DNA of 64,000 nucleotides from Neoconidiobolus thromboides FSU 785 (Eukaryota > Fungi > Entomophthoromycota). The position numbers were made by a program, and so were the translations under genes. The notes under the pieces were generated by a model. It did not search any database and was not told the DNA's origin. It was given only the letters and a program-made list of their open reading frames with translations. Position 1 is the stretch's first letter. Each line of letters starts with the position of its first letter. The stretch lies in the NCBI GenBank assembly GCA_025603075.1, contig MU626284.1, positions 1 through 64,000 of the forward strand. Direction: 5' to 3'. Positions 4,315-37,322 of this stretch are shown one piece after another.

Positions 4315-4941
4315 ATGAGCCTAGAGAGCGTTGTTGGGTTATCTACAATCACTCATAATAGCTCACTGTCAGAGCCTATTAATTCAACTACTCATCCATT
4401 AAAAGGGCTCAAATTAAGATCAGAGTACACTTTTAAATGTAATCTTGACGAGGTATGCTACAAAGTAATGGTATATGGTGATATCAATCTAAAAAAAGAA
4501 TTGAAAAGAACAATAATAAATACTTATTGCTTTCGAATGTTTTTAGTTTTACCTATATCATTTGGTGCATTATTCGGATTTATAGCAATACTTGGAAGCA
4601 GAGAGTATTTACTTTCTTGCCTATTAGCTATTACTGCATTATTTATACTTAGTTTTGGTATTCAACTTTATGTGAGTCTTTTATTTCTTATTTTTTATCT
4701 TTAATTGATAAAAATTTAGTTTTTAGCCCATTATCTAAAATCCGTCCATAGTAAACAAAGTTATATAAAGCTAAATAAGCTTACAGTCGCTCATTTTGAA
4801 AAATCTATAGGAGCAAGAGATCAAACAACAAATGAGCAGGCAGACTCTCGACCTCAAACAGAAAGAGAGATTTATGTCCTACCTCCACCACTTTATAATC
4901 AAGCTTTCGACTCACCACCTGCTTATCAATCCCCTAGTTGA
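4315..4941 (+). CDS. Uncharacterised 2-TM protein with PPxY motifs (about 192 aa; exons 4315-4671, 4720-4941)
   Basis: Intron GTGAGT...TTTAG (48 bp) at the same position as in paralogs; exon 2 reads FLAHYLKSVHSKQSY...LPPPLYNQAFDSPPAYQSPS*. Confidence 0.85.
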
Positions 4942-5824
4942 TTATATAACATATTATTATAGTTTTGTAAATAATAACTATTATTAACTTTATTTCATTA
5001 TTATTTAAAATAATTTTGCAATGACATTTAATCTAATAAAATCAAGATATTAAAATTTTTAGTGAAGTTAAAAATTAAGAATTCTAAATATGGTAAGTAA
5101 AATTCAATTAAAATTGAGAAAAAGATTACTATCAAAAGATATTGAAAAGATATTTATCTATTCCTTTTATGATAAATAATCTTAGTAGAGGGAGTTGGTA
5201 TTATTTTAAAATAATGAGGAGTTTATAGCTAGGAAGATTCAACTATTAAAAATATATATAGATGCCTCCTGAAATATAATATTAGAATCTATAAATAAAA
5301 TATACTTTTCTCTACGAAACCTCAAAGGAATATTAAAGTTGCCAAGTTAGTAAGTTTGTTAATGGATTCTGATAATCATATATAAAAACATATTCTATTA
5401 AGAAAAATCCATGGATATTCAGTGTTTACATTGATAAGAATCTAAAAAAGAAATATAAAAGTTTGGTGTAATAGAATCCAATTTTGCTTCACAGTATCCA
5501 GTTTTTTAATACTTTTAATAATAATACCGGCTACCTTTATAACTATTTTGCCTATTTAACAAATATATAAATTTTTAATGTAATGTCAAGTTCAATCATC
5601 AGAATATATTTCAAACTAAACTTGAATTTTAATCCAACAAATTCCTAACTTCCGTCTGCTAATTTTTAGAACCCAACAAATCCTGAGCATAAATTAACGA
5701 ATAGTCTAGTCACTTCCCCTCAGATTTACTCATCAAGTTTTTAACTATGATAAAATAAAAAATAAATAAATTCCGAAAAAGTTCATTTTTTAATTGAGCT
5801 TTTTCTCGAAAAGCTTAGTTAAAG

Positions 5825-8800
5825 ATGAAAGATATGAATTGTAATGAAATTCAAGAAAATGAAATTGAAGCTTTAAAAGCGATTTATATGGTAAATTTAT
5901 ATTCTATTTGTTAATAGGTTTTATATAATTATTGTAGGATGATTTTGAAATTATCGAATCGAATGTTCGATCTTGGAAGGTAAAATGAAGATTTAGATAA
6001 ATGGTTTAATATAATAACTGAAATGTTATTAGGTATCAAAAAAATATAAAGAATTTAAGATCAAAATCAAACCGATGGATGAAAGTATACGAGATAATGT
6101 GGAGATCTATGTAAATATCAAGTAATTCGGACATCATTATTCAAAATAAAATAAAATAGAGTAATTGAATATTTCAGGTTCCCACCAGCTTATCCAGTAA
6201 TAGCTCCAGAAATATTTTTAGAATCCCCAAAAGGGTTATCAGAAAGCCAATATAATGAGCTTAAAAAAACGATCAAAAATAAAACTCAAGAATTATTGGG
6301 TTCCGAAATGGTATTTGATCTATGTGATTTGGTTTTGGAGTACATTACCAATAACCATGTAGATGATAAAACTAGTTCATTTCATCAACAGATGATTGAA
6401 AGACAAGAGAAATCGATTAAAGTAAGAGATTTTATTTTTAATTAATTTCGAATTAGATTTATAGACTCAATATTAGGAAGAAGAAGAAAAAGCCCAAAAA
6501 GAATATGAAAGAATATTACAATTAGAAAAAGAAAAAGAAGAAAAAGAAAAAGAAACATTATCTAAAGCACTTGAAGCGGAGTTATTTAAAAAAGAACAAA
6601 AATTGCAAGAAGAAAGATTGAAAAGGAAATTAATCAAAACAGAATATAACTTAGGTTCGCTAATTGAATTTGATCGTCCAATTAATATTTATTTTAACTC
6701 TTCCCATTCACAGGTAATTAGGATTTATATTAGTATACTCTTTTTTTGAAAGATAAATTATATAGCCATTGACTTTCTTAGCTGTAACTTTGGGACCTTG
6801 TATATCCAAAGGTAACTTTTAGTATAGTTTGTAATTTACTTAAATTCTAAAAGAAGAAAGATAAATATTGTAAAACGTATTTTGCATTACCATATAATCC
6901 AATAACAAATGGGGATACAACAACACCGCCCTTATTAATTGAAGAAATTATCTTATTTCCACAAACAGAAAACAAGATTCAAGCGATTGAAGATGTAATT
7001 TTATAAGTTGATATTAATATACATCTTATTAACTTAAGTTTTAAATAGCTACGAAAAATTGAAGATACTTTAGAAAAGTTAAAAAATATACGTCATCCAG
7101 GTATCTTAATGATTTATGAATTTAAGGTGGATGATTTAGATTTAAATAACATCTCTTGGAAGTTATTAATATTACAAGAAACTCGATTATTATCTTCCAG
7201 TTTAAAAAATTCATTAAAAAAGTGTGGACCTTTGAGTATCAGTTTAGCTAGAGTCTATTTTAAAGAGTTAATTAAAGCGGTACAAGTTTTACATCTAAAT
7301 AACATTAATTATAATTGTAAGAGAACTCTTATGAGATTAAAATAGTAGTTTTTATCAATGACGATTTTTTAGATATTCGTACCGATAAAATTATATTAGA
7401 TTGTGAAGAAGAAACTATTGAAAATTCAAATATGGAATCCTATTTTGATCAAGTTTATTCTTCTGTTAAATTAATTTCTAGAAATTATTTACAATATTCT
7501 ACAAGTAAATATAATAATAGTGATAATGAATATTACTTTATTAAATTGGATTTAATTAGATCTTAACGAGGGATGCTTTGCAAATGATTCAAAATGGTAA
7601 TTTATTATCATTTTTTTATAAAAGAAATCAGTATTAATTAAAATAGGGCACCTCCTGAATCTAGATGTGAAACGGAACTTGATAGGTAAATTTCAATTTT
7701 AAAAAATTTAGTTCAATGATGACTAACATGATAAAAGTCAAGGAGATATTTGGGATTTAGGAATCGTATTAGTTGAAATGTTACTTGGTCCAAAAATACT
7801 CGATTCTTATACTTCACTAACAGATTTATTAGAAACTTGTAAGGCCGTTTACTTTATAATAGAAAATCTAATGAAATATATTAGCTTTTGGCCATTTTGA
7901 TATTCATGCGCGTGATTTAATTAATTCAATGCTTCAAATGTAAGTTATTTGTTTTTTAATCTTTAATTGCTTGTAATCTAATTGTATTTTAAAAAAGAGA
8001 TGCAAGAGATCGACCTAAATTAAATAAAATATTAACTCATCCATTTTTAAAAAATGAAACTGTTATGGTATCATTTTCAGGTAATTTAAGCATCATTATT
8101 AAGTAATATTATAATTCAATTAATTTTATATTCCATATTAACAGAACATTTGAACAATCCCAATTCAAGCGGATCTAATAAAACGCAACAAATGATGATG
8201 GCTAGTTCACCAGAATCTAATCCAAGTAATTCTTTTCAATATAAATCAATGATGGAACAAGCTCAAAATTTAACAAAATCAATATCAAGATATGAAAATG
8301 ATTTTGAAGAACTACAATTTTTGGGTAGAGGTAATTATAATAATATTGACAATATTAATAATATAATTAATCTTTGTTCATTTATTAGGTGGTTTTGGCG
8401 AAGTTGTTAAAGCAAGAAATAAACTTGATGGAAGGTAATTTAAGTTATAATTTAAATTATTATATAAATTACTAATTTATTTATCCAGGATTTATGCTGT
8501 AAATTAATTAGTTAATTTAATTTATGAACATAGCACTAAAATTTATTTAGATAAAAAAAGTGAAATTAGATACAAAAGATACAGAAAATAGTAGAAAAAT
8601 ATTAAGAGAGGTATCTGCCTTGTCTAGATTACACCATCAATATATTGTTAGATATTATACTGCTTGGTTAGAAAGTAAGTTTATATTTTTAATAAACAAA
8701 ATAAATTATTGATAAATCATTATAGACGGTAATGGAGCATGGGATGAAGATACGTCAGAAGATAATTCAGACAGCGAAGAAAGTGATAGTGAAGTTAGTG

Positions 8801-11800
8801 ATATGGATGGCGTAGAAGGTGATTTTTTATATACAGAAAAATCGACTAGTTTTAGTATAAAAAAATCAATGCCAATAAGATTTAAAAGAAGTCAAAGTGG
8901 GCATACTGAATCATATGATGATAATTCATATTATGATTCTGAATCAAATAGTCAAAGTAGTGGATTATCATATAGATGTTTATACATTCAAATGGAATAT
9001 TGTGATAAAAATACATTAAGAGATGTAATCGATGAGTCTATTAGTATTGATGAATGTTGGAGAATATTAAGACAAATATTGGAAGGATTAGATCACTTGC
9101 ATAGCCAAGGTATGATTCATCGAGACCTCAAACCAAGTAATTTATTTTTGGCTGCTAATGGGGATGTTAAAATTGGTGATTTTGGATTAGCAACTTCAAG
9201 TAATAGTATGTCGGAAGGTGTCGGATCTAGAAGGATTAGTTATGAAATTTATAATGGATCTATGACATCTGAAGTTGGTACTTCCTTTTATATGTCGCCT
9301 GAAGTTGTATCAAAAACAGCAAGATATAATCAAAAAGTAGATATGTATTCTTTAGGTATCATATTTTTTGAAATGATTTATCCATTTTCTACAGGGATGG
9401 AAAGGGCTATGATATTAAGAGATTTAAGATTACCAACGATTTTATTTCCACAAAACTTTCCATCTAATTTAAAAGTACAAGCTAAAATCATACAAAGTTT
9501 ATTAAACCATAATGAAAAAGAAAGACCAACGGCATTAGAATTATTACAAAGTAATTTATTACCAACACGTATAGAAGACGAATATATTCAGGAATGTATA
9601 AGAACAATAGCTAATCCAACTACTCCACATTATGGAAAATTAATGAATACTTTATTTTCCCAACCAATCGATCGTCATAAAGATTTAGTTTATGATCATA
9701 AAACTAAAAATAGTGGGGAATTGCCAGCTGCTGTTTATTCTGAATTTATACGTTCATTATTAACTGTTGTATTTAAGCGACATGGAGCAGTAGAATTTAT
9801 AGCTCCACTATTGATACCAAAATCAGAAAAATTTTCTGAATTCCAAAAGCCGGCTTATCTATTAGATCCCTCAGGTAATATTGTTCAAATGCCTTATGAT
9901 CTTACCCTTCCATTTGTAAGATTTATGTCCCGTAGCAACATTCTAGCCTTAAAAAGATTTACATTTGATCGAGTTTATCGACAGAATATGGAAGATGATA
10001 GTTTAATTGAAGTCCAAGAAGCAGATTTTGATATTATAACAACTAATAAAGAAGATATTGTTTCTGAATCTGAAGTCATGAAGATAGTAGATGAAATTAT
10101 GGATTCTTTACCAATTAGTATGGTAACAGATTGTTATTTTCAAATTAACCATGGATTACTAGCTACAATTATAATGGATGCTTGCAAAGTACCTAAACAA
10201 AAAAGAGCTAATGTGGCTGTTATTTTATCTCAATTAGAAGCCCCAAAAACACTATTACAAGTGAGATCGTTATTAAGTCGATGTCATTTGTCTAAAGCTA
10301 TGGTAGAAGAATTATTATTATTATATGCAACTGGAGATTTAGATTTATGTCATAACAAATTACGTAAAATGAGTTTATTAAAAGGATATAAAGCAACAAT
10401 TGACAAATTATTTGAGCATTTAAAAAAAGTAGTCTATTATTGTAAAAAATTAGGAATTAATCGAAAAATTATCTTTAATTCCTTTAATATGTATAATTTA
10501 CAATACTACGAAAGCGGTATTATGTTTCGGATGATTAGAGATGGTAAAAAAGGGGATATTTTGGCAGTCGGTGGGAGATATGATTCCCTTCTAAGTAGGT
10601 ATAGAAGTCCACTAGCATCGACTATTCCATTGAAATATGGGGTAGGAGTTTCTATTGCTTTACAAAAACTTACCTTATTATTGTCTCAATATGAAACTCA
10701 AAAAAACAATAGTAAAAAAGGGGATGAAGATCGTAATACGAATATTTGGATACCAAAAATTGTAAATTGTTATTTAAATATATTAAGATTAATATCCAAT
10801 TAATTAATATTTTAGTTGGATGTTTATATAACATCATTTGGTAAAGGATTATATGAAGAAAGATTAGATATAGCACGAGAATTATGGAATCATCAAATAC
10901 GATGTGATTATCGACGAGAAGAAGAAGCCGAATTCAATTTAGATTTGTATTTACAAAATAATAAAATATTAGGGGTGAACTGGATTGTATTTGTTAAATC
11001 TACTAAAAAAGATGAACATTCAGTTAAAGTAAGAAATATTAATTTGAAATCGGAAGTGGAAGGTAAAGAATTATTACCATTTATGTGAGTTATGGATGAC
11101 TGATTGATTTTTTCATTAGTTCCATTGGCGGAATTGGCAAATTATTTAGCTAATGAAATTGCTGAAAATCATCGATTGGATTTACAAGCGGCAGGTATTA
11201 CGACAAGAAGAAAAATGGAATTTGGGAATAAATATTTGTTAGATGATGAAGGTAAAGTTGAATATCTAAAACCAATAATAAATAATAATAAGGGCAATTT
11301 TATTTAGGGTTATCATCAGGCTTATCCGATTTAAATATCAACTCAAGTTCAAGTTGCATGATTGACGAAGATATATTACCCACCTTTAACTTGAATTTAA
11401 TTAATACAGCACCTAATAAAGTGAATCCAAAAAGAAAAAGACAATTATTTGATAGAGGTAAGCTAAATAAGAAAACTAATTGTCATTATATTTTTTTATA
11501 AGTGTGTTAATGTGTGAATTGATTAGCTTTAGAAGCGGTATTGAAAATTGGTAAAAACGCGTTTAAATCTGGTACTCCAGTTTTAGTTATGGAATTATCA
11601 AGAGAAGGATTAAGAAAAATACTAGAATGTTCATTGCAAGATGAAGATAGTTTTAAAAAAAGTAAGTTTAAATTAAATCAACATTATTTGTTATTATTTA
11701 TATAAATTGCTTTAATTCATTATTGTTATCTTAGTGTTAAATACGTTACCATCAAATCAAAGAGCCCAAGTACAATTGGCTAGAAGTACCTTATTATCTT

Positions 11801-11889
11801 ATAATACATGTGTAGATAATGATACTTATTCTATGGCTTGGTTATATTCTATAAAGGATGATTGTGCCCTTTGTTATCAATTTAAATAG
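5825..11889 (+). CDS. GCN2: eIF2-alpha kinase GCN2 (multi-exon)
   Basis: N-terminal RWD (EIQENEIEALKAIYM|DDF), pseudokinase region, kinase ([49 protein letters not shown]), HisRS-like domain (LAVGGRYDSLL...GVGVSIAL) and C-terminal domain. Confidence 0.95.
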
Positions 11890-12070
11890 TTATGTTTTTA
11901 AAATAAAAGTTTTTTAGAAGCCAAATTTCAATTATACATTAATAGTGTATTATGTATATTTGTAAGAAATAAAACAATAACATCTGTTTATTTATTTTAA
12001 AAAAATAAGTCTTAACTTGTTTGCACTTCATTACTATCTAAGGCTTACTACGCATTTTTCTAATATATAT

Positions 12071-13026
12071 TTATTCCTCATCCAAACTCTGTCCCTCAAA
12101 GATGAATATTGGAATCTTCAACGTAATTAAAGGATGATTAATATTTTCAGCATCTTTAATTAATTGTTGATTATATTTCACTCTTCTTTTATCATATTTA
12201 CTTAATTTACTACTTTTAGTTTCTATTAAATTATTATTATCATTAGTATCTTCTTCATCTTTTTCTTTTTCTTTTCGGTTTTTTCCAACCATTTCCACAG
12301 GGGGATCATTTATTGGACTTTTTGCTAAGGTAGGTAAGATGATGGCAATATAAGCTTCCGTATTATACTAATAGTAAAATATTAATATATATTAATATTA
12401 TAAATCATTAAATAAACTTACCTTATCAAACAACAATTCTGGTTTATCTATTATTTTTTTATTAATTTCAATAATAGTACCATATAAATTAGCTCCAATT
12501 GGGAAATTTAATTCCTCTATCTTCCCTTCTTTTTCCAATTTCACTTGAATAGTAACTAATGTAGTATCTGGTTCTAGTTTATAAGCTCCTTTTTTTCTTT
12601 TTCCTACAGCTGGATTATCTAGGATGTTTTTGTTGATATCTAATTCGATGGATTTTATGAATGATAATTGTGATTTTAAGGAGAGAAAAGGATGGGTTTC
12701 ATGCAACATGATTAAACTAATACTATTTATATATTATGCGTTAAGTAAATATTAGCAATAAAAACGTCGTTTTTTATATTACCTACTAGGTGATTGATAG
12801 ATCATTTGATTTGAAAATTGAGAGTTAGGTTTAGCTTCTATTATGTAAATAAAAGATCAGGATGGGTTCAATAAAACATAGTTAACTTACTTGCTTCATA
12901 AATATTAAAATATCTTTCGACTGGACTAGTGATATTTTGATTCCAAGATTCTATTTTTTTTTCATATTTGCTTAAATCATACTGGATTTCCACTGTATCT
13001 ATATGCTCGCTAGGTTCACTAGTCAT
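12071..13026 (-). CDS. ABITRAM: ABITRAM/Simiate (FAM206A)-like protein, glycine-cleavage-H-like fold (multi-exon)
   Basis: Spliced product has IYQSPSSISLIMLHETHP, AVGKRKKGAYKL, GTIIEINKKIIDKPELLFDK and TEAYIAIILP. These parallel recalled FAM206A motifs (HP, VSGKFKRGA, EVNENILHKP, TEGYIAVVLP). Confidence 0.75.
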
Positions 13027-13148
13027 TATTCTTTTTTAGTTTGATAAAAGAGAATAAAAAACTAAGTTTTTAGTTTTCGAATATTCAAAAAATTTATTTT
13101 TTTACATTTTATTTTAAAGATTCACTAAAAACCAAAATAAATACAAAG

Positions 13149-14659
13149 ATGAATAACGCCCTTGAAGTTGTTGAAAGTCGATCACCATCACCTATACTTA
13201 CTATTGAAAATGTACGAAATGAAAGTAGTAGAGTAGCTGATATAACCAATCAATTAAATAAATTAAAGGCTAAATTACTAAAAGCTAAAATGTTAAAATC
13301 AAACTCAGTTGCTAAATTACAAAAAGAATACGATGACTTAAGTCTAGAACTAGAAATGGATAGACAAGAGATGGATAAACAGGTAAATAGTTATATCAAA
13401 CAGCCGTCATTGGTTTTATTAATGTATAAAAGGAAAAAAAACGACAATTTGTAAGTCATAATTTTGGTAATCGATTTACACATGCAGAAAATAAATCAAA
13501 TAAATTAAAAAGAAAGGTAAATTACATTCATATAATTATAAAATTAAAATTTTCATTTGTTTATTTGTTTTTATAACAACTAGTCAGAAAAAGAAGAAGA
13601 TAAAGATATTATGGAATTATTAAGAGAAGAAAAAAACAGTAAATCCGGAGATCAAGTTAAACATATGGTAAATAAAATATGTAGAGATGGTGGATATAAA
13701 GATGATTTAGAGTATATTGAAGAAAGAGCAGAACATTTTGCTTCAAAAGATAATAGAAATAATAAAAAAGATATTGACTATAAAAGTAAGTTACTCACTC
13801 TATAGATAAAAGGATTTATCATTTAGTTTTATTATAGATTATAAAAAAAATCAAGAAGCTTTAGATAAATGTCAATTTTGTTTTAAAAATGGACAAGCCC
13901 CAATAGCTCCAATTATTTCTATGGGTCAAAACGCATATCTTGCATTACCTACAGTTACAGATTTAGTATCAGGCCATTGTCTAATTATACCTGGGGATCA
14001 TTGTAAATCAAGTTTAGATTGTGATGATGCTACTTGGAACGAAATTCGAGTAAGTTTATGTTAATTATTAATTTAAAAAGAAGCAAAAAATATTAACTAA
14101 TGATTATCAAATAGAACTTCATGAAAAGTCTAATGCGTATGTTTGCTACTTTAGAAAAAGGAGTAATCTTTATGGAAACTGTAATGAATTTAAACCATTT
14201 TAAACATACTGTAATTGAATGTATACCTTTACCATGGGATTTATCACAAGATGCAACTGCTTATTTTAAAGAGGGATTAATTGATATAGCAGATGAATGG
14301 TCACAACATAAGAAGATTATAAATACTAAAGAAAGAACATTTAGAAAATCAATGACATCCAATCTACCTTATTTTCATGTTTGGTTTCATCCAGATGGTG
14401 GTTTAGGACATATTATTGAAGAAAGTGAAAAATTCAAAAGTTATTTTGGAAAGGTAAGAGAATGTTTGTTTGTATACAAGGTTATAAGATTAATAATATA
14501 TGTTTTATTTAGGAAATTATTGCTGGTATGTTAGATTTAGATATAAGTTTATGGCGTAAACCAAAGTATCAAGATAGTAACGAAAACAAGTCAAGAGTAG
14601 ATAAATTTAACAAAAAATTCCCTTGGGAAAATTATGATTGGACTAAATTATTAGATTAA
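13149..14659 (+). CDS. CWF19L2: CWF19-like protein 2 (CwfJ C-terminal domains, spliceosome-associated; multi-exon)
   Basis: CQFCFK, GHCLIIP.DH, HTVIECIPLP, DEWSQHKKII, LPYFHVWF, GLGHIIE, FGKEIIAGMLDL, YDWTKLLD*. Confidence 0.9.
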
Positions 14660-14789
14660 TTAATAATAAAATGTTATATATTCTTATTTGTTTGATAAAA
14701 TAAAAAATAAAAAATAAAAACAAAAACTTCCTTAAGATTTAAAATTAAGTTTAAAATTAACAAATAAATGGATTTTATTTTTGTTTTTT

Positions 14790-15440
14790 AATAAAATCAT
14801 ACAGTCCTTATTACATTATAACTACTAGCTAATGGCTTTTCAACAATAATACCATCCGAATTTTGATCATCTATTGATCTACTACTAATCCCTTTATCTA
14901 TCTAAACTTTTGTATCATCATTCCCATCTCTATCCTCATTTAATCCACAACCAATTTCTAAACTATTATTAATTGGAGTATCAACTCTCATCTAAGATAA
15001 TTTTCCTAGATGGAGTAACATAATAGAAACATTGAACATTCAACCAAATTGTCTTTTATTCTATCCAAATTCGAACATCTCCACTAGATTCTGTGTAACA
15101 ATTAGTTGTTTTGTCTAACCTTTTTACCATAGAAATCAATTCCTATCTCTTGACTAATTTTTTTATTAGGTTCTTTTATAATAATAATTGGAAACTACTA
15201 CCCCAAGATTCACCAAAATCGATTCTGTCACTTCAATTTCCATTAAAACCTGTAATACAATTTGAAATAGTCTTTCTAAAACCCGAACAACCGGCTAATG
15301 GCTTCGATAAACCAGATCAAAGACCTTGATCACCTACTCAACATGGATATATCATACCATCTATTTTTATATCAAAGGGAACTTTATCACCATTGGTTGA
15401 TGAATTGAACAATAATAAGTTATGATTATTAATAACATGT
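14790..15440 (-). pseudogene. Decayed ORF, possibly for a secreted protein
   Basis: Hydrophobic start (MLLIIIT/LLLFNSSTNG), then long protein-like frames with in-frame stops and frameshifts; locally higher GC. No family recognised. Approximate ends. Confidence 0.35.
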
Positions 15441-15510
15441 TTGTCGTATATTTGAAGCCAATTGATTTTATTTTGTTTGTGTTAAAATAAAGTGGAGCTA
15501 AATACAATAT

Positions 15511-15603
15511 GGGAATGTTTTTTATTTCATTACTTTTTCATTTTTTAAGCACTATTTAAGTGAAAAGATCGTTAGTAAAATTCTTACAAAAAAATACATT
15601 CCC
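15511..15603 (-). mobile_element. MITE family copy
   Basis: ATAT-GGGAATGTTTTTT...AAAAAAATACATTCCC-ATAT. Confidence 0.85.
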
Positions 15604-15798
15604 ATATAGTAAATCCCAATAAAGAAATGATTCAATAATATATTTATGAAATTAATTATTTTTAATATTAGCATAATTTATTTTTATACTAGTAGAGTAT
15701 TTATAACAACAAGGCAGCCTATCAAAATTGATCTTTTAAATAATGTAAGTTATTTTATTCGATAAACTTTTTTATATTAATAAAGTTAGTAATAAAAT

Positions 15799-15886
15799 AT
15801 GTATTTTTTTGCTAATAATTTTACTAACAGTTATTTTACTAAATAGCGTTTAAAAAAGAGAAAAAGAAATGGAAAAAAGCATACCT
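15799..15886 (+). mobile_element. Degenerate MITE copy
   Basis: Interior AATTTTACTAACAG...AAATAGCGTTTAAAAAAG; termini eroded. Confidence 0.5.
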
Positions 15887-16298
15887 ATACTAATCATTTA
15901 TCATTTTTTGAAAAATTAAGTGAACTTAAATCCATAAAGACATTGTTCTATTAGATTCAAATAAACAGTTAGTAAGCATTTTGAAAAGTTCAAAGGATTA
16001 AATTTCTTATCATTTAATATTTAAAATCTGGACTCTATCTAACAACATGATCCTCTCTATTTAATGATTTCAATATGCTATATTTAGCCTAAATACTATT
16101 TAATAACTTTTTCAAAATATTCTTATAAATCTTAACTTATTTAAACTGCTATAGTTTACTATAAACCAATGAGATTGAATGACTTGAAATCTGCCTTATT
16201 TTCATATTTGATTTCATCTTAATAGTGATAAATTTGAGATATTTCATTAAAGAAAAACAAAAAATTACAGTGCATTTTAAGAAGATAAGAGAGGATAT

Positions 16299-16391
16299 GT
16301 GGATGTATTTATGTTTAAGAATTCTACTAACAGTCTTTTATTCAAATAGTGCTTAAAAATAGAAAAAGTGATGAAGCCGAAAAACATCCCT
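16299..16391 (+). mobile_element. MITE family copy
   Basis: GTGGATGTATTT...TAAGAATTCTACTAACAG...GAAAAACATCCC. Confidence 0.8.
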
Positions 16392-16809
16392 ATGTTTTGA
16401 TTTGGATAGGAATATAAGGTTAATATTGCTTTTTATACTAAATTTAGGATATTATCTCTAGTATAAGGGTTAGATATTCGATCTATCTCATATTAATCAT
16501 CAAATTCGTTGACCGAAATGGTGGAAAAATAAGACATTAATGTGGAATAGACTGAATATTTCTTTATAGTATAATTCAAAGTATTTGGTAGTATAAATAA
16601 ATCCAATTAGAAAGATTTTAAATAATTTCTTTTGGGATAATTATAATTAAATTAAATTAAATTATTAGATTAGTACAATGGTAAATTATATATACATTAT
16701 CTTTATATGTAATAAGAGTTATTTTTATTATAATAATAGCCAAAAAAATGATCTTATAATAATAGATTTGATTTTAATTTACACTGTAAAATTTAATAAA
16801 TAATCAAGC

Positions 16810-18288
16810 TTATTTTGAATTAGGAAAATCAATATCTCGAAGTTCTTCTTCAGAATCCAAGCCCATTTGATAAGAACTATGAGAACAAGAAGAATAACTA
16901 GTAGCATCGGTTTCTAACAAGGGTTTTGAAATGGACTGTGGTGATGACTTTGGTGTAAATTCCATCTCTGGATTACCATTTCTTTGAGATTTCATTAAAA
17001 TATCCGCTATAAAATCAATACTATAAAATAAGTAATCAATGAATTTCAAGAAAATAGGATGATGAAAAACAGGGTGAAAGAGCGATACATTATCTTCAGG
17101 TACAGCATAAGAACCAGAAGTAATACGATAAGTTTGACCACGCCACGTAAATGTAGAACCTAAAACTGAATAAAGATATAAAGGTAATGCAGTTAATTCT
17201 CTAAATGCCCAAATAACCATAAAACGTTGTAATTCTTTTAAATTTAACTTATTTCCAATAAGTTGCTGATTTAGTTGAAAATCTAATAAAAACCATACTA
17301 CTAAATGGTAAGCAAAAAAGTTAAAAATGGAAATATTTAACAAATAGCTAAAACCATAAGAAGCTAACATTCCATTTAAAATGGACTCAGTAAACGGTTC
17401 AATGATAGTAGCTTGTGGTACAATATATTTTCTTAATCTACACCACCTTGATCTTCTATTAAAATAAGCCGAAGTAGAAATAGATCCTAATCGATTATAA
17501 GCTAAATCATAAGGCATTTTAATTTTTAATCCTTGGTCCCAAATAGCTTTAGCAATAAAAAAATCTTCTGCTAATTGATTTTCAAATGCTTTCATACTGC
17601 CAACACAAGCCAAATCACTCTTTCTATATAAACAGGATTTACCAACCACACAAGGTTCAAATATAAAATAATTTAATAATGTATACATCTTAGCATGAGC
17701 TGTATTTAAAAACATACTCTCTAATTGAGAACCAAAAGTAGTACCATCTATACCCACAGGTAAATGATGTACTAAACCCACATTTTCTTCCATCATTAAT
17801 TTAGCTGAACGAGATAAACACCCTTTATTTAAAAAAATATTGGAATCGCAAACCCATATTAGATCGTGTCGACTCTGCTCATATGCTTTTAATAAATTAC
17901 TAACTTTTGGATTGACCCCTTTTTGATCTTCGTCAATGATTAATTTAGCGTCTATATTAGGGTATTTTTGGATTAATTCTAATACTAATGGTATACATGC
18001 ATCTTCACTGCTCTTTACATTAAATATCAATTCAAAATTGGGATAATCTTGTAAGAATGAGGACTCTAAATTTTGTTTTAATTTATATTCTAAGCCACAC
18101 AATGGTCGCAATACACTAACAAATGGGGCGTCTTTTGAGTTCGTTATAGGCTCATCTTTAATTTCTCGATATGTTTTATATTGATATTTACATAGAATTA
18201 AACTTATTATATTGATTGCCATTAGTATCATCCATGCGCCTACACTAATTGTTATAAATAAATAAAATAAAGCTTCTTTAAAATTCAT
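16810..18288 (-). CDS. GCS1: Ceramide glucosyltransferase (glucosylceramide synthase, GT21), intronless, 492 aa
   Basis: N-terminal TM, VSVLRPLCG, GVNPKVSNL, WVCDSN, CVVGKS, LAEDFF, RRSRWCRLRKY ((Q/R)xxRW motif), EPFTES. Confidence 0.93.
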   Translation of the reverse strand: MNFKEALFYLFITISVGAWMILMAINIISLILCKYQYKTYREIKDEPITNSKDAPFVSVLRPLCGLEYKLKQNLESSFLQDYPNFELIFNVKSSEDACIPLVLELIQKYPNIDAKLIIDEDQKGVNPKVSNLLKAYEQSRHDLIWVCDSNIFLNKGCLSRSAKLMMEENVGLVHHLPVGIDGTTFGSQLESMFLNTAHAKMYTLLNYFIFEPCVVGKSCLYRKSDLACVGSMKAFENQLAEDFFIAKAIWDQGLKIKMPYDLAYNRLGSISTSAYFNRRSRWCRLRKYIVPQATIIEPFTESILNGMLASYGFSYLLNISIFNFFAYHLVVWFLLDFQLNQQLIGNKLNLKELQRFMVIWAFRELTALPLYLYSVLGSTFTWRGQTYRITSGSYAVPEDNVSLFHPVFHHPIFLKFIDYLFYSIDFIADILMKSQRNGNPEMEFTPKSSPQSISKPLLETDATSYSSCSHSSYQMGLDSEEELRDIDFPNSK

Positions 18289-19725
18289 GATTAAAACTTA
18301 AAATAAATAAATTGATTTTAAATCACTTTGTCGTTTTATACTCTTTCTTAAACGTTAGTAATTTTTAATGTTTTAAATGACACAATTTTATTGGTGATCG
18401 CAGTTGAATTTGAATTCACTTGTCATAATTAACAAAAAATTCTATATAGCTGTTGCGGCTTTTTACGAAGTTTTTAACTCCACATTTAAGAATAAAATTT
18501 AAGCCAAAATTGATATAATATAATAATTGAGCACGAAAAAAAATTACATAATAAGTAAGTTGTAAAAGTTATCACTAAAAAGTTATAAAAGAGTTGGAGA
18601 GGTATTTGCGATGATTTATAAGCAAAGTTATAAAATGGACATAAAAGGTAAATCATACGCTTTTTTTAAGCTATTTTCTTTAAGGGAGTAAAATTAGCCA
18701 CTAATTATTCGTTATTTTCTTCCAGGAATAAGTGTCAAGGGCCTACTTTTTCATTACTTTTGATTACCCTGAAAATACTGATTGTTGAAGCAAAAAGATT
18801 GCTAATGTTTAGCCTATAAACTCAATTGATCCGTAAGCCGAGCCTTTTGAATTGAGTTGACCTTGAATCGGATAATACTTGGATTTTTAAATCGGATGAA
18901 GTGAATTTTAAAAAATTAAAATAAAGTAACTATAAAATTACTTTTGATTTTTAAATTCATTCTTATTTAGAATTATAATAGTATCTTAATAGCAACATCA
19001 TTTACATTATGTTTATATGGAGATTATAATTAATAACAGGTTTATTTATAAATTCTTGGCCTTTTTAGACCTTAAAGTAAAACAATGCCAATGGTTTTAT
19101 TTTATGGAGTTAAAAACGGACTAAAAATGAATATAGAAATCAGAATTGATAAAGGTTGATGCTAAAGAATAAATAGTAAAATTTTTACTTTTTTCAAAAG
19201 TTGATATTGATTGTGTTAATTTAAACTATAAAAATTTCTATATTTTATTCAATATGTCCAAGTTTATGGGGTGATATTGAAAGTTTGTAAGCTCTTTAAT
19301 GGAAATTCAATAGCTACTGAATTTTAAAATGGGTGCTAAGCCTATTACTTAACATACTTTTAATATACGATACAAAATGCCAAAATGCTATAATTTAAAT
19401 ACTTAATTTATATAATCTAAAGTTTTTATATGAGCCAATATGTTAATAAAAAGCCTTATTAAGTGAAAAACAATGTCAAGAATCTATAGCACTAGCATTT
19501 TCAAATGTATTTTAGATGCTTATTATATCAAAGCTAATAAATGATAGTATAAACAATCAAATTTCATTGATAAATTTTAAAAAATTGTCAAATTAATGAT
19601 AAGTTATTAAAATTATAGATTTAATTCGAAAGTAATTGGTTACATGGGTAGAATCTTTTATAGTAAATTTTGCCGAAAAGGTTTAGCTTTTGATCAAAAT
19701 AAACTCTAATTAAAACAACTAATAT

Positions 19726-19813
19726 AGATGTGTTTTAAGAATTTTACTACAATCTTTCCACTCAAATGGCACTTAAAAAATGAAAAAGTAATGAAACCAA
19801 AAAAAACAGTCCC
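19726..19813 (+). mobile_element. Degenerate MITE copy
   Basis: TAAGAATTTTACTACAATCTTTCCACTCAAATGGCACTTAAAAAATGAAAAAGTAATGAAACC; left TIR partly deleted. Confidence 0.7.
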
Positions 19814-20090
19814 TAATTTAATTAAAAACGTAGCTGAACTGAACTTTATAAGATAAATATTTTAAAAAGTATTCAGCTTAGAAGGCTATAATAAATGTTA
19901 TTTAAATATAACATAGCCATTTTAATACCATAGCTAAAGTTAAAGTCACAGCTAATGTTGATTTTTTTATGATATAAAATAGAATTCTTATTAAAGATTT
20001 AAAAATAATCTACTCACATTACTTTTAAATTTTGTTATAAATTTTTTTTTTACGATCTTTATTTAACTTTTTTAATATTTTTTATTAAAA

Positions 20091-31478: not shown

Positions 31479-34164
31479 GACTTGTTACACATTATAAATA
31501 AATCAAATAAAAATTATAATAATAAAAAAACACGAAATTAGTATTGTCAGTTTGAAAAGACATTCATCAACTTGATATAGTCAAATGGATTTTAACTAAA
31601 TTAAGTTGTAATTGAACACTTTTTTTACATTTTAACACGTATTATTAGAAATCAACAATGTTCGTTAAGATCATATTGTTCATCACACCTTTACTTATTT
31701 TATCCTTAAATTTATAATCTTTAGAATGAATCGAAATCTCCCTTGTTTTTTATATTCTAAATAAATCGTTTTGGTTAAACTTATTAACCAAAACTACTTC
31801 AAAACAAAACGTTCTTTTGTTGATTACCCTGAAGTTGCCATTTGTTATTTTTCCCTAAAAATAGCTGAAAAAACTTTACTAAAGTAACAATTTAATTTGA
31901 TTCGTTAATTTGAAGCTAATAAAGTATTATGTGAATTAAAGAATTCAAACTCAAGAATAAACAATGAAGTACAGCATCAAAACGATGTTTCAATAAAAAG
32001 ATAGTTCTATTTAATAAAAGAAATCGAAATATATCATTTTGATTATTAAGTTTATCTAAATAAAATAGTTTAAGAAATTGTTAACTAACTTCAAATTGTT
32101 TAAGATTAATATTCTTTCAGATTAAAATGATTCGTTTTAATATCCTAAGTTAAAATAATCATCAAATAATCAGGGATAATAATAAGCTTCAATTCAAACG
32201 ATTTTATAAAGTCATTTGTGAATTGATCTATTTATAAACTAGTTTTTAATACATTGAAAAATGATCCTTACATATCTAAGATTTTAGGCTATTGAATTGT
32301 TTTATTTTATTTTATTTATTTTATAATCAATAATTGCAAAACACAGCAATCTATGAATATTTTGTGTTCTCACTATACCCAAAGTAAGAAAAAGAATAAG
32401 CAGTTAAATGATACCTATTTGAATATTTAGCTTAATAAAATTTAGATATTTAACCATATTTTCAATGAGTTCTAAAATTAGAGTAGTATAGTTTATTCTG
32501 AAGTTTTCTTAGGTTTCAATTTTTTTTTAATTAGGCAATAATACTAGTTGAACCTAATTTACAAGAAGATTGAACTTGAACTTAAATCTCTTTTAACTGT
32601 TATTGGTTGGAAGGTTAAAAGAATCATGTTAATAAGTGGATAGTGGATCCTAAATTATAAATTGGACATTTAAAGTTAACTTGATTATTTAATTTGTTTT
32701 AATGGCAGTTGAATTAAAAACTAAGTTGGAATTGCAAAAAGTTGTATCTTTTTCAATTTAGTTTTCTCGCAATTTTATGCTTTAAAATACAAATTCTCTT
32801 ATTTTACTATATTTAGAAAGTATGATTATTTTTCCAGTATTATTAAGTTTTAACATAACATTTTAAAATAAGGTTATTTAATAAACTTTCTTAATAGTAT
32901 CTTAATGAGTATCAAACTGCCTTTTTATTTATAAATAAAAACGATATAGAATATTTTCAATACTTCTAATTGATTGAATAATTACAGGGTATATTCTATT
33001 AATTAAATATAAAATACAAAGCAAAATGATGAATTTTTATGCTTAACTATAAATGCTCTATAATTCAAGATGAATAGACAAATATATAAATTCGAAGAAA
33101 TAGAATAATGGGATCGAGTATTTATACAGTTATATAAAAATAGTTGTTAAATGTTAAGAAACCGTCCAATTGATTGTTTGATATGAAAATCTTAATAAAA
33201 AAGGAGTGGTAAAAAAAGTGAAAATTATTATGATGGTTAAAACTCCGTTATTAAACTTAAGTAATGTATTAGAAAATTGCTTTATTTTAGCTTGTTTTTT
33301 TGTAAAACTGCTAATGAAAGTATAAGAAAAGATGAAGAAAGGTTATATTAGAGGCTGAATCTAATTAGACTATATAAAATAGCTCCATTTTTATCTATAT
33401 AATGTTTTACACTTTAAGGCCCATCTTAATTAAGCTAATATCTATAAAATATTTAAATGATAAATCATCGTTCAAAGTCGTAACAGGATAATTATAGATA
33501 ATAAATTGATTATTTAGTTATAAATATACAAACAGTGGATCCCAATTTTAATAAAAAACTAGTATTTATTATTTTTTATTATCAAAATGTTAGTATTTCA
33601 ATTTTCTCATGTTATCACTTATTTCAATAAAAGCAACAATCTAATTTCAAAAACAAGTAATAAATGCCCACTTTTTTTTCGATAAAGTAAAATGTATAAA
33701 AATAAAAAATTTCGTTTGTTAACACATAGAAAGAGGGCAGTTTTTTATGTTTAGCAAATTAGCTTGAACTATACTAAAGAAACTTTAAGTAATTAAACTA
33801 CTTAAAACTGTCTTCATAGTTTTATTGATTAGTCAAGTTGATTAAATTGTGTGACAGAAACCTATACTAGCTACTACTTGTAAAAACATATCAATACGTT
33901 TTCTAACAACGTATTAAATAACAATAAAAGTATATAAAATCATACATAATTTGATTCATTGATAACTAGTTAATAAAATAATAAGTTTTCTTACCTTTGA
34001 TTATTATATAATAATAGCTATAGTTTATTTGATTTTTTCAAGGTGGAAGCTGTAATGTTCAATAAATTAGTTTTTAGTTTAAGAATTTTAAGTTCTAAAA
34101 ACTGATAATATTAAATATTAGAAAATAAAAAATAACAGCTATTAAGTTTGATGAAGATAATTTA

Positions 34165-34210
34165 TAATATAATATAATATAATATAATATAATATAATAT
34201 AATATAATAT
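34165..34210. repeat. (AATAT)n microsatellite
   Basis: About 9 tandem 5-bp units. Confidence 0.9.
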
Positions 34211-34452
34211 CATTTTTAATAATTTTACAAAAGTTATTAACTTTTATTTGATCGTATTTGATAAAAGTAAATCATTTAAATTTGAATATTTGAAGTCATT
34301 TGGATATCAGATTAAAATGCAAATATAAAATCAAAATAAAAAAGAATAAGTTAGTCAATGTTTTGAAATGAAACAAATGCGACACCAAGTTAACAAATTT
34401 AAAACATATTTTAACATTAATTTATTAGCAATAATATATATGAAATCTATTA

Positions 34453-34547
34453 AGGAAATGCCTTTTGTTTCATTACTTTTTCTATTTTAAACATTATTTT
34501 ATTGGAAAGATTGTTAGTAAAATTCTTAAACAAAAAAATACATTTTC
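34453..34547 (-). mobile_element. Degenerate MITE copy
   Basis: TTTCATTACTTTTTCTATTT...TTGGAAAGATTGTTAGTAAAATTCTTAAACAAAAAAATACAT. Confidence 0.65.
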
Positions 34548-34881
34548 ATTATTATAATAGAATCTACTCATACTATTAACATCCTTCTATTTTTATTAAA
34601 ATGATATAACTATTCAAATCATAAGCATCGAATGACTTTGATGGCTTGATATTTCTGAAACAAGAAATCTAAAACCATGGGGAAACTTAACCAATAATGT
34701 GCATTTTAATAACTTGAATACTCAAGAATGTGACTGCTTTATTACGTTGACAATTGAATAAAAAAACGTAAGTTCAAAAAAAAGTATATAAACAGAAAAA
34801 CCTAAAGAGTTACAAGTAAGAAAAAAAGAAAATAAACAGAGTAAACTATTAACTTTTATTATTTAAAAAACCAAACAGAAT

Positions 34882-35511
34882 ATGCCCATTGCCAGTAGTC
34901 AAAAGAAAAAATCCCTAAAATTATTAGTACTTGGAGAAGAAGCTCACGGAAAGACAACGTTTACTGCTGCATTATCCAAAATATTAGCAGTTAAAAGCGT
35001 GAATAAAGCTACTCCATTAGATGAAATTGAAGATACTGATACCCAAAAGATAAAGACATCCGATGGTGATAAAATTCAAGTGAATTTTTCTAAAGTAGAT
35101 ATCGAAAGTGATAAGCTAAATTTAATGTTATATGATTTCCCTAATCACAATGAATTTATGGATTTTATTCAAAATACTCAAGAAAGTATTGATGGAGTTA
35201 TATTAGTAGTAGATGCAGTGGAATGTTCTGGGGAAAACACAAAAGAACAATTGAAGGCCGTGAGTGCTAAATTAAAAGATACTAAAAACATGATTGTATT
35301 TTTAAACAAAGTTGATTTAACAGAAGATAAAGATCAAATTGATTTAGCCGAATTGACTACTAAAGATATGCTTACTGGACTTAATATTACTCCAGATTCA
35401 ATCCCCTTTTATCGTGGTTCTGCTTCCGCTGTCATTGATTCCAATGATAGAAAATCTTCAAAACCTTTTGTGGATTTTATGAAAGGCGTCAATAAACTTC
35501 CTTCTCATTAA
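34882..35511 (+). CDS. Stand-alone EF-Tu-like G-domain protein (209 aa), with no domains II/III and degenerate switch motifs
   Basis: GEEAHGKTTFTAALSKILA (cf. GHVDHGKTTLTAAITKTLA), YDFPNH (cf. VDCPGH), DGVILVVDA, IVFLNKVD, PFYRGSA. Intact, intronless ORF whose stop falls at the end of domain I. Confidence 0.85.
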   Translation: MPIASSQKKKSLKLLVLGEEAHGKTTFTAALSKILAVKSVNKATPLDEIEDTDTQKIKTSDGDKIQVNFSKVDIESDKLNLMLYDFPNHNEFMDFIQNTQESIDGVILVVDAVECSGENTKEQLKAVSAKLKDTKNMIVFLNKVDLTEDKDQIDLAELTTKDMLTGLNITPDSIPFYRGSASAVIDSNDRKSSKPFVDFMKGVNKLPSH

Positions 35512-36715
35512 GTGATATTGAAAGGTATTAATCTACTTTTTTCTTATTAAATTTTGGTATGTATAATATATATTATTAAATAAATAAATATATATTATAA
35601 TTTGGTTTAAATTTCTTTTAATTGATTTGTTTTGATTTTTAAGTAGTTCTGGTTGGATTTTAAATAATGATTTGTAGAATAAATACAAGGTTAGTTGGTC
35701 CTACACTTTCATTCTTTGTTGTAAGACAATACTTTTAAAATATTTAATTTGATAAAATTAAATTTCGATATTGTTCATCTTTATTCTACCACTTAAAATA
35801 AGAGTTTATCCTTTATCATATAACATCTCCATTTTAGCTCATTTCCTTACTTTACTAATTATTGATCTTATTATTTAAGTGCTTCATTGAGTGATACTAT
35901 AAAAAGGTATTTGAATTTTCGTCCAGTTCAATTGTAACAATAATTTGTATTTCTAAGTTTGAATCTATCTCTCATTTGTCACTTTAAATATTCAAAATTT
36001 TAATAATTAATTGGAAGTTCCTGAAGGATGAAGTTTTAAATATCATTATTTATTTTAACTTTAAGATCAAATTAATGAAATTAATATTTAATTGTTTTAA
36101 TAAAACTAATAAATAGAATTTCCAAGTATTACACTCATGTTTTCAATAAATAGATTAATTATTGAACAAAATCAACTTAAGAGAGATAATCATTTATCAG
36201 TAAAATGTTTATAGAAGGTAGAGAGAAAACCCAACTCCATTTTATTGAATCTTCTATAGTCAGATAATTAAAGTGAAATTTATTTTATTACAAATCTTGA
36301 GATAAGTTATTATTGAATTTTAGTATTTCATATAATAATGAAATAATGTATAAGGTTATAATCATTTTTATATTAATCGACAACTCTGTTTGATAAGACG
36401 AACTTTTAAGTAAACACTTGAATTTTTATTAAATAGTTGAATTATTCACATATTCTGAATCAAACATTATCTTCCTTTTTGATATAAAATTGAAGTTAAG
36501 ATTTTATTTAAAATAAAAAGTTTAAGAACATATAGTAAAAATAAACAAAGAAAAGAATAATTAAAGTTTGTATTCTATTATAAAATAAAACAATAATTTC
36601 AATCAATAGATTTATTATTATATTAATTTTAACAATAAATAACCAAAGTGCAAATGGAACTATATATATATATTAAAATTTTTGTCTCTCAATTAATTAA
36701 TAATTTCTTCTTTTA

Positions 36716-37322
36716 TTAAGATGAATTAGACTCCAACATTAATTTAAAATTTAACACATCTTTTTTAGTTACTAATCCTACTAAATTACCATTTAACTCA
36801 ACTAATAATAAATGAGGCCTAAAAATAAAGATAAAAAAATATCATATAATCAAATAATTAGTTATTACCCCACTTTACGAAAAAAAGTACGAATAATTTC
36901 TAAAGATAATTTAGGATGAACTAAAAATGGATTCTAAATAAAATTTTAATATTAAGTATTAATATTAATATTAATAGAATGCTTACTGGATCCACTAAAG
37001 GCCCAAAATCTAATGAAGTCGAATTAGCTATGGAAGGAATATTTGGTTCTTCAAAATCAATTGACTGTGTAATAGATGGACTAAAAAAACAATGGGCATT
37101 TGGATTATATTGATTTAATTGTTTGTTTTGATCTAAGATAATAGTAACAAAATAATAAAATAATTAATATGAATAAAAACTAATATTATTAAATTTACCT
37201 AATACTTTTAGTATATCATTTCTTGCAATTAAACCTTCAATACGATAATCTCTTATACCATAAACAATAGGGTAATATGTAAATTCTTCATTTTTTATTA
37301 AATTTTCTATAATAAAATTAAT

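Follow-up and report, generated by a model that had tools for sequence, protein, structure and literature searches.

We analyzed a stretch of 64,000 nucleotides of the fungus Neoconidiobolus thromboides FSU 785 (Entomophthoromycota; assembly GCA_025603075.1, contig MU626284.1, positions 1 to 64,000), hereafter called the window, and focused on a small gene of its forward strand whose product, the window protein, corresponds to the G domain (domain I) of the translation factor EF-Tu, encoded alone. Few proteins are as conserved as the EF-Tu-type factors, which normally work as machines of three domains. The gene is a single-exon open reading frame (ORF) of 209 codons, running from an ATG at 34882 to a TAA ending at 35511. 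An in-frame stop codon (34864–34866) precedes this ATG by five codons, and the predicted product has a mass of 23 kDa and a pI of 5.2. The ORF is located inside a 160-kb scaffold, with a HARE-HTH gene on one side and a CLC channel gene on the other. Its GC content (31.6%, and 21% at third codon positions, GC3) equals that of the neighbouring long ORFs, and the flanks are at 19–20% GC. The features of the locus are collected in Table 1.

Table 1. Features of the stand-alone EF-Tu domain-I gene and of its immediate flanks (positions in the window).
Feature	Position	Strand	Basis or remark
TATA-box-like element TATATAAA	34785..34792	+	read from the sequence; 46–56 nt upstream of RNA-contig 5' ends; putative promoter element
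5' untranslated region (UTR), without upstream exon	34838..34881	+	contig starts in runs X11, X5 and X6, no joint
Coding sequence, 209-aa stand-alone EF-Tu domain-I homolog	34882..35511	+	profile matches, structural model, joint-free RNA contigs
G1 / P-loop GEEAHGKT, residues 18–25	34933..34956	+	relatives all G[HQ]EGHGK[TS], the Massospora ORF being read unspliced
Degenerate switch-I region, residues 56–70, with Gln66 for the Mg/gamma-phosphate Thr	35047..35091	+	ten residues missing in the other five members
G3 DFPNH, residues 85–89: Asp kept, Gly replaced by Asn, His present	35134..35148	+	alignment
G4 NKVD, guanine-specificity motif, residues 142–145	35305..35316	+	NKxD invariant in 6/6
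G5 GSAS, residues 179–182	35416..35427	+	GSA invariant in 6/6
Family-specific motif DSNDRKssKP, residues 186–195, absent from EF-Tu	35437..35466	+	candidate interaction surface
Transcribed stretch beyond the stop codon: long 3' UTR or read-through	35512..36391	+	run X3 contig 35146–36391

The original prediction, made from the DNA letters, had described an intact and intronless ORF, collinear with domain I of EF-Tu and stopping where this domain ends, and this is confirmed by profiles, RNA contigs, and alignment. The window protein matches the Pfam model GTP_EFTU (PF00009) with an E-value of 1.3e-19 (70.9 bits for a gathering threshold of 26.5), and four NCBIfam EF-Tu models align with it over model positions 9–197 of about 394 (E 6e-27 to 4e-25), while the EF-1alpha, SelB, and EF-G models of the same collection reach only 26–36 bits (33 for EF-1alpha). 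The best matches among solved structures are all EF-Tu (E 4e-21, query residues 12–204). The Pfam models Arf (33.4 bits) and Roc (27.2 bits) are above their own cut-offs but far below the EF-Tu models (94 bits), and the window protein does not qualify as a small GTPase of the Ras superfamily (Arf/Ras/Roc), since it begins with MP and has neither a CaaX box nor the DxxG motif. It is not a functional EF-Tu either: it scores 88.3 bits on TIGR00485, whose equivalog cut-off is 522.4, and it carries the G domain alone, without GTP_EFTU_D2 or GTP_EFTU_D3. The motif pattern is that of a pseudo-GTPase, the fold being kept and the G2 Thr and G3 Gly being lost across the family described below.

Both ends of the protein fit an isolated domain. 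The N-terminus aligns collinearly with that of bacterial or mature EF-Tu, no presequence is visible, and no exon lies upstream; the stop codon is located within the last helix of domain I. A tblastn search of the 64-kb window with 11 full-length EF-Tu-type proteins (E<=10) returned the G-domain match only and no domain II or III. The predicted absence of a mitochondrial presequence and of a downstream remnant both hold. A structure prediction, which had been proposed as a check, yields a confident EF-Tu domain-I fold: the AlphaFold model, computed from an 85-row alignment, has a predicted local distance difference test score (pLDDT) of 91.9 and a predicted template modelling score (pTM) of 0.89, and Foldseek superposes it on domain I of EF-Tu with a template modelling score (TM) of 0.86–0.87 and a root-mean-square deviation (rmsd) of 1.7 A, the collinearity extending over EF-Tu positions ~9–197.

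The window protein belongs to a family of stand-alone proteins. A word-index search with the single protein matched only the window's own partial gene call; an exhaustive HMMER search recovered P0002 (194 aa, E 4e-30), aligned from end to end and scoring far higher than the EF-Tu background. Profile searches brought the family to six members, i.e., the window protein (209 aa), P0153 (201 aa), P0154 (191 aa, from two JGI samples and one SRA run), the Entomophthora muscae protein present in two copies (KAJ9083076 and KAJ9048515, 194 aa), P0151 (194 aa), and the Massospora cicadina protein KAI0243797 (197 aa for the genomic ORF). These members score at E<=5e-53, and the next matches, which are all EF-Tu, begin at 7e-32. 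The five relatives, of 191–201 aa, are all stand-alone and share a common start (MP) and a common end. P0151, P0153, and P0154 sit on transcript-like contigs of 0.9–1.3 kb carrying nothing else, the E. muscae and Massospora genes are likewise single-exon, and tblastn found no domain II or III at any relative's locus. The defining features, namely a length of 190–210 aa, the MP start, the ..NK[LI]P.. end, a two-residue insertion, the RGSAS..DSNDRK..KP stretch, and a G3 devoid of Gly, are found in all six. In a maximum-likelihood (ML) tree, the family is monophyletic (100/100), and the window protein branches outside the sequences from Entomophthoraceae.

The E. muscae and Massospora members are annotated as 'hypothetical protein'. 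There is no family-specific model in Pfam, NCBIfam, or PADLOC, no description of such a family was found in the literature, and none is mentioned in a survey that covers translational GTPases from all of life. The family is thus undescribed, and it is probably restricted to Entomophthoromycotina. A metagenome scan with the family profile recovered ordinary EF-Tu only (27–34% identity) and no added members. Two other candidates were set aside. P0110, which starts with MPTSSQ and has the P-loop GQEGHGKS, lacks the insertion and the C-terminal motif, has lost NKxD, and at 26% identity is no closer than EF-Tu. The bacterial ATP_bind_1 small GTPases, suggested by an ESM Atlas feature search (0.90, 146 shared features), are below the reliable range, and PF03029 is under its cut-off. 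The Massospora record deserves a remark: in KAI0243797.1 (186 aa, JAKSZP010003941.1, 3001–3594 of the examined locus), the P-loop is missing because it is encoded in an annotated 33-nt 'intron', while the ORF of the genome is continuous, with the motif GQEGHGKT. The public gene model looks wrong.

The alignment of the six members separates what has been kept from what has been lost. The family, at ~30% identity to EF-Tu, retains the HGKTTLTAA P-loop helix, NKxD, and GSA; G18, H22, G23, K24, T25, T26, D85, N142, K143, D145, the GSA of positions 179–181, and the core strands are invariant or nearly so. The original prediction had listed the G1, G4, and G5 motifs as kept, the switch-I Thr as changed to Gln, and the G3 Gly as replaced, and the alignments agree for the window protein, where HMMER sets IQVN opposite ITIN and places Gln66 at the Thr position. 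The substitution, however, does not extend to the relatives: the RGITI block of switch I is altered, with Gln for Thr, in the window protein, and removed by a ten-residue deletion in the five others. The G3 Gly is lost in 6/6, the DCPGH of EF-Tu giving way to motifs broadly of the form DF[PVT][NS][HQ] (DFPNH, DFVNH, DCDTD, DFTSQ, DFTSQ, and DFKSQ), and the Pro is also lost relative to EF-Tu. The catalytic His had been reported as retained. This stands for the window protein, and for P0153, but not as a family feature, since the residues found there are H, H, D, Q, Q, and Q. Moreover, His118 is replaced by Gln in all six members, and the Glu of helix D (the EF-Tu consensus in 94% of rows) is replaced by Ser or Thr, part of this helix (DL.EL) being kept.

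Other positions have been gained and are invariant in the family. They comprise a Lys cluster after helix 1, an SDK in the beta2–beta3 turn, Asp111, the two-residue insertion, which precedes beta-5, and a C-terminal stretch, RGSAS-x3-DSNDRK-xx-KP...M...NK.P, the members ending with ..NK[LI]P and two more residues. In this stretch, S187, N188, D189, R190, K191, K194, and P195 do not vary within the family and depart from the EF-Tu consensus.

The gene is transcribed. Contigs of four public runs were placed on positions 33800–37300 of the window. Runs X3 and X6 are RNA, because their contigs show the adjoining CLC gene spliced, with three short GT..AG introns removed. Over the ORF, the run X3 contigs 34951–35114 and 35146–36391 are collinear with the genome and cross the stop codon without a joint, and the 5' ends of RNA contigs from three runs fall at 34838, 34840, and 34848, i.e., 34–44 nt ahead of the ATG. 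The RNA contigs show neither an upstream exon nor a splice to downstream exons; the RNA check proposed with the original prediction has thus given unspliced transcription through the stop codon. Contig depth over the ORF (4,400–19,900 in X3 and 800–2,300 in X6, for 523 and 79 over the CLC gene) suggests that the ORF is highly expressed, depth being a rough measure.

The gene is also under purifying selection. In run X6 (34848–35436), two gene versions coexist at a depth ratio of ~2:1, one identical to the window and the other ~5% different. The divergent version shows 16 coding differences, 13 synonymous and three non-synonymous (S5N, A43V, and T54A), which corresponds to a ratio of non-synonymous to synonymous changes (dN/dS) of ~0.06 (binomial p 1e-6). 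The comparison of E. muscae with P0151 gives a dN of 0.13, a dS of 1.43, and a ratio (omega) of 0.09. The two X6 versions could come from two strains, two species, or two paralogs. The original prediction had named several outcomes that would go against it; what was found is a gene that is expressed and has conserved orthologs, with no assembly error hiding the rest of EF-Tu and no match to an already described short GTPase family.

The RNA contig that covers the end of the ORF continues at high depth over ~880 nt past the stop codon. This part could belong to a long 3' UTR, result from read-through, or be a non-coding transcript of its own, and the contigs give neither its strand nor its true 3' end. 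Between 35512 and 36391, tblastn detected no EF-Tu domain II or III, and no Rfam match, splice joint, or notable ORF was found.

Outside the fungal family, the closest known proteins are, besides EF-Tu itself, divergent EF-Tu-like proteins, mostly bacterial, with a degenerate G3. Some are stand-alone proteins of ~200 aa (the Streptomyces protein WP_073879531.1, proteins of planctomycete-like contigs, and UJR11747.1 of the rotifer Adineta vaga) and others are three-domain paralogs (P0115, P0062, P0057, P0108, and P0124). Many of them share with the family the loss of the G3 Gly, the replacement of His118 by Gln, and a G[HQ]EGHGK P-loop. They differ from it by the absence of the two-residue insertion and of DSNDRK, by an identity of 26–34%, and by their bacterial contexts. 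No functional description exists for any of those compared, and PADLOC defence models match neither the family nor the bacterial stand-alone proteins. In Streptomyces sp. CB00316 (LIXI01000006.1, 6001–6630 of the examined locus), the 209-aa WP_073879531.1, with a DFPSH G3, is located between a Tn3-family transposase and a resolvase; it is apparently transposon cargo. The metagenomic proteins P0091/P0359 combine a Ser/Thr kinase, which matches the PD-T4-6 phage-defence models (E 1e-77), with a fused EF-Tu-like region whose G3 is degenerate (DMLNS).

The origin of the family was addressed with a careful ML tree (85 rows, 207 columns, LG+C20), for which the program warned of long branches; the stem of the family measures 2.5 changes per site. 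In the free tree, the family is placed next to the mitochondrial EF-Tu-like row of a mite and to other sequences with an N-terminal extension, which are probably mitochondrial (96/84). When two long rows are left out, it moves to the divergent, bacterial-type group, which contains three-domain paralogs, N-terminally extended proteins, and the ~200-aa stand-alone proteins. A tree constrained to join the family with this group is not rejected, its log-likelihood being 9.3 above that of the free tree, with a p-value of 0.65 in the approximately unbiased test (p-AU). The original prediction offered a retrocopy of mitochondrial TUF1 or a bacterial transfer: the descent from an EF-Tu-type gene stands, but the trees favour neither source consistently, and the two are not separable because of long-branch artefacts. 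The collinear, presequence-free N-terminus would mildly favour a bacterial-type source. The degenerate states shared with the divergent group could reflect an ancestor that was a bacterial EF-Tu-like gene and had already become degenerate, and could equally reflect convergence after release from ribosome-dependent function.

We propose, with a probability of about 65%, that the ORF is a functional single-exon gene for a stand-alone guanine-nucleotide-binding pseudo-GTPase descended from an EF-Tu-type domain I. The original prediction of a repurposed nucleotide-binding module with pseudo-GTPase-like changes agrees with the transcription, the selection, and the stand-alone orthologs described above. 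GTPases sense the gamma-phosphate with the switch-I Thr and the DxxG Gly, and ribosome-activated hydrolysis uses the equivalent of His84. Given the invariant P-loop, G3 Asp, NKxD, and GSA, guanine-nucleotide binding is probably retained; the window protein would still hold the nucleotide by the Lys/Thr of the P-loop, the Asp of NKxD, and the SA motif. Because domains II and III are absent, it would carry no aminoacyl-tRNA, and because the switch-I Thr, the G3 Gly, the conserved catalytic His, and His118 are lost, switching and activation on the ribosome in the EF-Tu manner would be impossible. The family protein is then most likely a nucleotide-loaded binding module, non-cycling or very slowly cycling, like the RGK proteins. 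RGK proteins (Rad/Gem/Rem) are of the Ras type and lack the DxxG glycine, and Ski7 is a member of the EF1A family that keeps domains II and III. As working analogies, both would offer a G domain in which the nucleotide-binding motifs are kept while the DxxG Gly and/or the catalytic residue is missing, and which works through its partners and not through cycling; both are unrelated in descent to the fungal family. The new partner would be met by invariant surfaces foreign to EF-Tu, i.e., the C-terminal RGSAS-x3-DSNDRK-xx-KP...NKxP and the Lys cluster after helix 1, and the new function is probably carried by this family-specific motif and basic patch. The missing presequence suggests a cytosolic location.

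Several points weigh against this interpretation. The partner surface is conjectured from conservation, and both nucleotide binding and the absence of hydrolysis are read from motifs. The range of the family rests on databases with few annotated early-diverging fungi, and contigs cannot rigorously rank expression nor give the strand. Moreover, two members keep the His and three have a Gln, as in Ras Q61, and an altered but real GTPase cycle is possible. The protein would in that case be a genuine molecular switch, a new small-GTPase-like protein cycling between GTP and GDP with a catalytic His or Gln and perhaps with its own GTPase-activating protein (GAP) and guanine-nucleotide exchange factor (GEF). 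The invariance of G1, G4, G5, and of the G3 Asp, the polar His/Gln at the catalytic position in 5/6 members, the DFTSQE of the Entomophthoraceae, which recalls the DTAGQE of Ras, and the Arf and Roc scores above cut-off all speak for such a switch. We nevertheless consider it unlikely, as both loaded-spring sensors of the gamma-phosphate are gone (the Thr changed to Gln or deleted, the DxxG Gly replaced in 6/6) and one member has an Asp at the catalytic position.

The remaining explanations tie the gene more closely to EF-Tu itself. In the specific model drawn from the original prediction, a retrocopy of mitochondrial EF-Tu would act as a decoy or regulator of EF-Ts, or of the ribosomal GTPase centre and stalk protein. 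An intronless gene amid an intron-rich genome, the attachment beside eukaryotic mitochondrial EF-Tu rows, and the conserved part of helix D are what such a copy would leave. The attachment, however, behaves as a long-branch effect, since it shifts with the two long rows and the constrained tree is likelier; the N-terminus fits mature or bacterial EF-Tu; and no poly(A) tract or target-site duplication remains around the gene. The decoy role itself is not supported. His84, His118, and Glu152 of E. coli EF-Tu, which we take to be the contacts for EF-Ts and L7/L12, have other residues as their equivalents in the family, and we regard this explanation as quite improbable. A still more doubtful variant would be an abundant lineage-specific translation regulator, a nucleotide-locked G domain docking on EF-Ts or, in mitochondrial or cytosolic ribosomes, on the sarcin-ricin loop and stalk that make up the GTPase-associated centre. 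If true, the docked domain would slow translation down or put it on hold, for instance in dormant conidia, as a eukaryotic, domain-I-only counterpart of factor-occupied hibernating ribosomes. Finally, a pseudogene could also show degenerate catalytic motifs and a truncation where domain I ends, and the ORF might be a decaying fragment or chance ORF, i.e., contaminating bacterial DNA, a dead copy of EF-Tu, or the half or first exon of a split or mis-assembled EF-Tu. This is hardly credible given a dN/dS of 0.06–0.09, not near 1, six intact orthologs with identical ends, collinear transcription past the stop codon, a 160-kb contig with spliced eukaryotic neighbours and a host-like GC3, and no domain II or III within 64 kb.

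A lineage has thus kept the G domain of EF-Tu alone, as an independent expressed gene under strong selection and without the residues of ribosome-triggered hydrolysis. This constitutes a natural experiment on the capabilities of an isolated translational G domain, and the known pseudo- and non-canonical GTPases gain a family that had not been described. The gene could also serve as a marker for entomophthoralean fungi, a group that includes insect pathogens and occasional human pathogens. Degenerate EF-Tu G domains that stand alone also occur, in parallel, in a rotifer and in bacteria, in one case on a Tn3 transposon, which points to a broader class that is still unstudied.

Two further observations concern the surroundings of the gene, where Rfam, repeat, and promoter/terminator scans gave nothing meaningful. 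Upstream, at 34463–34543, lies a short dispersed repeat of ~80 nt, to which hundreds of X3 and X6 RNA contigs match only there, with a summed depth of up to ~60,000; given the many different loose ends of these contigs and their several variant positions, the repeat looks like an element of the miniature inverted-repeat transposable element (MITE) type transcribed at many loci. Downstream, the CLC chloride-channel gene lies on the minus strand (36693–37300, and on to ~40150), and its introns at 36818–36867, 36934–36986, and 37133–37198, all GT..AG, are removed in the spliced contigs of two runs.
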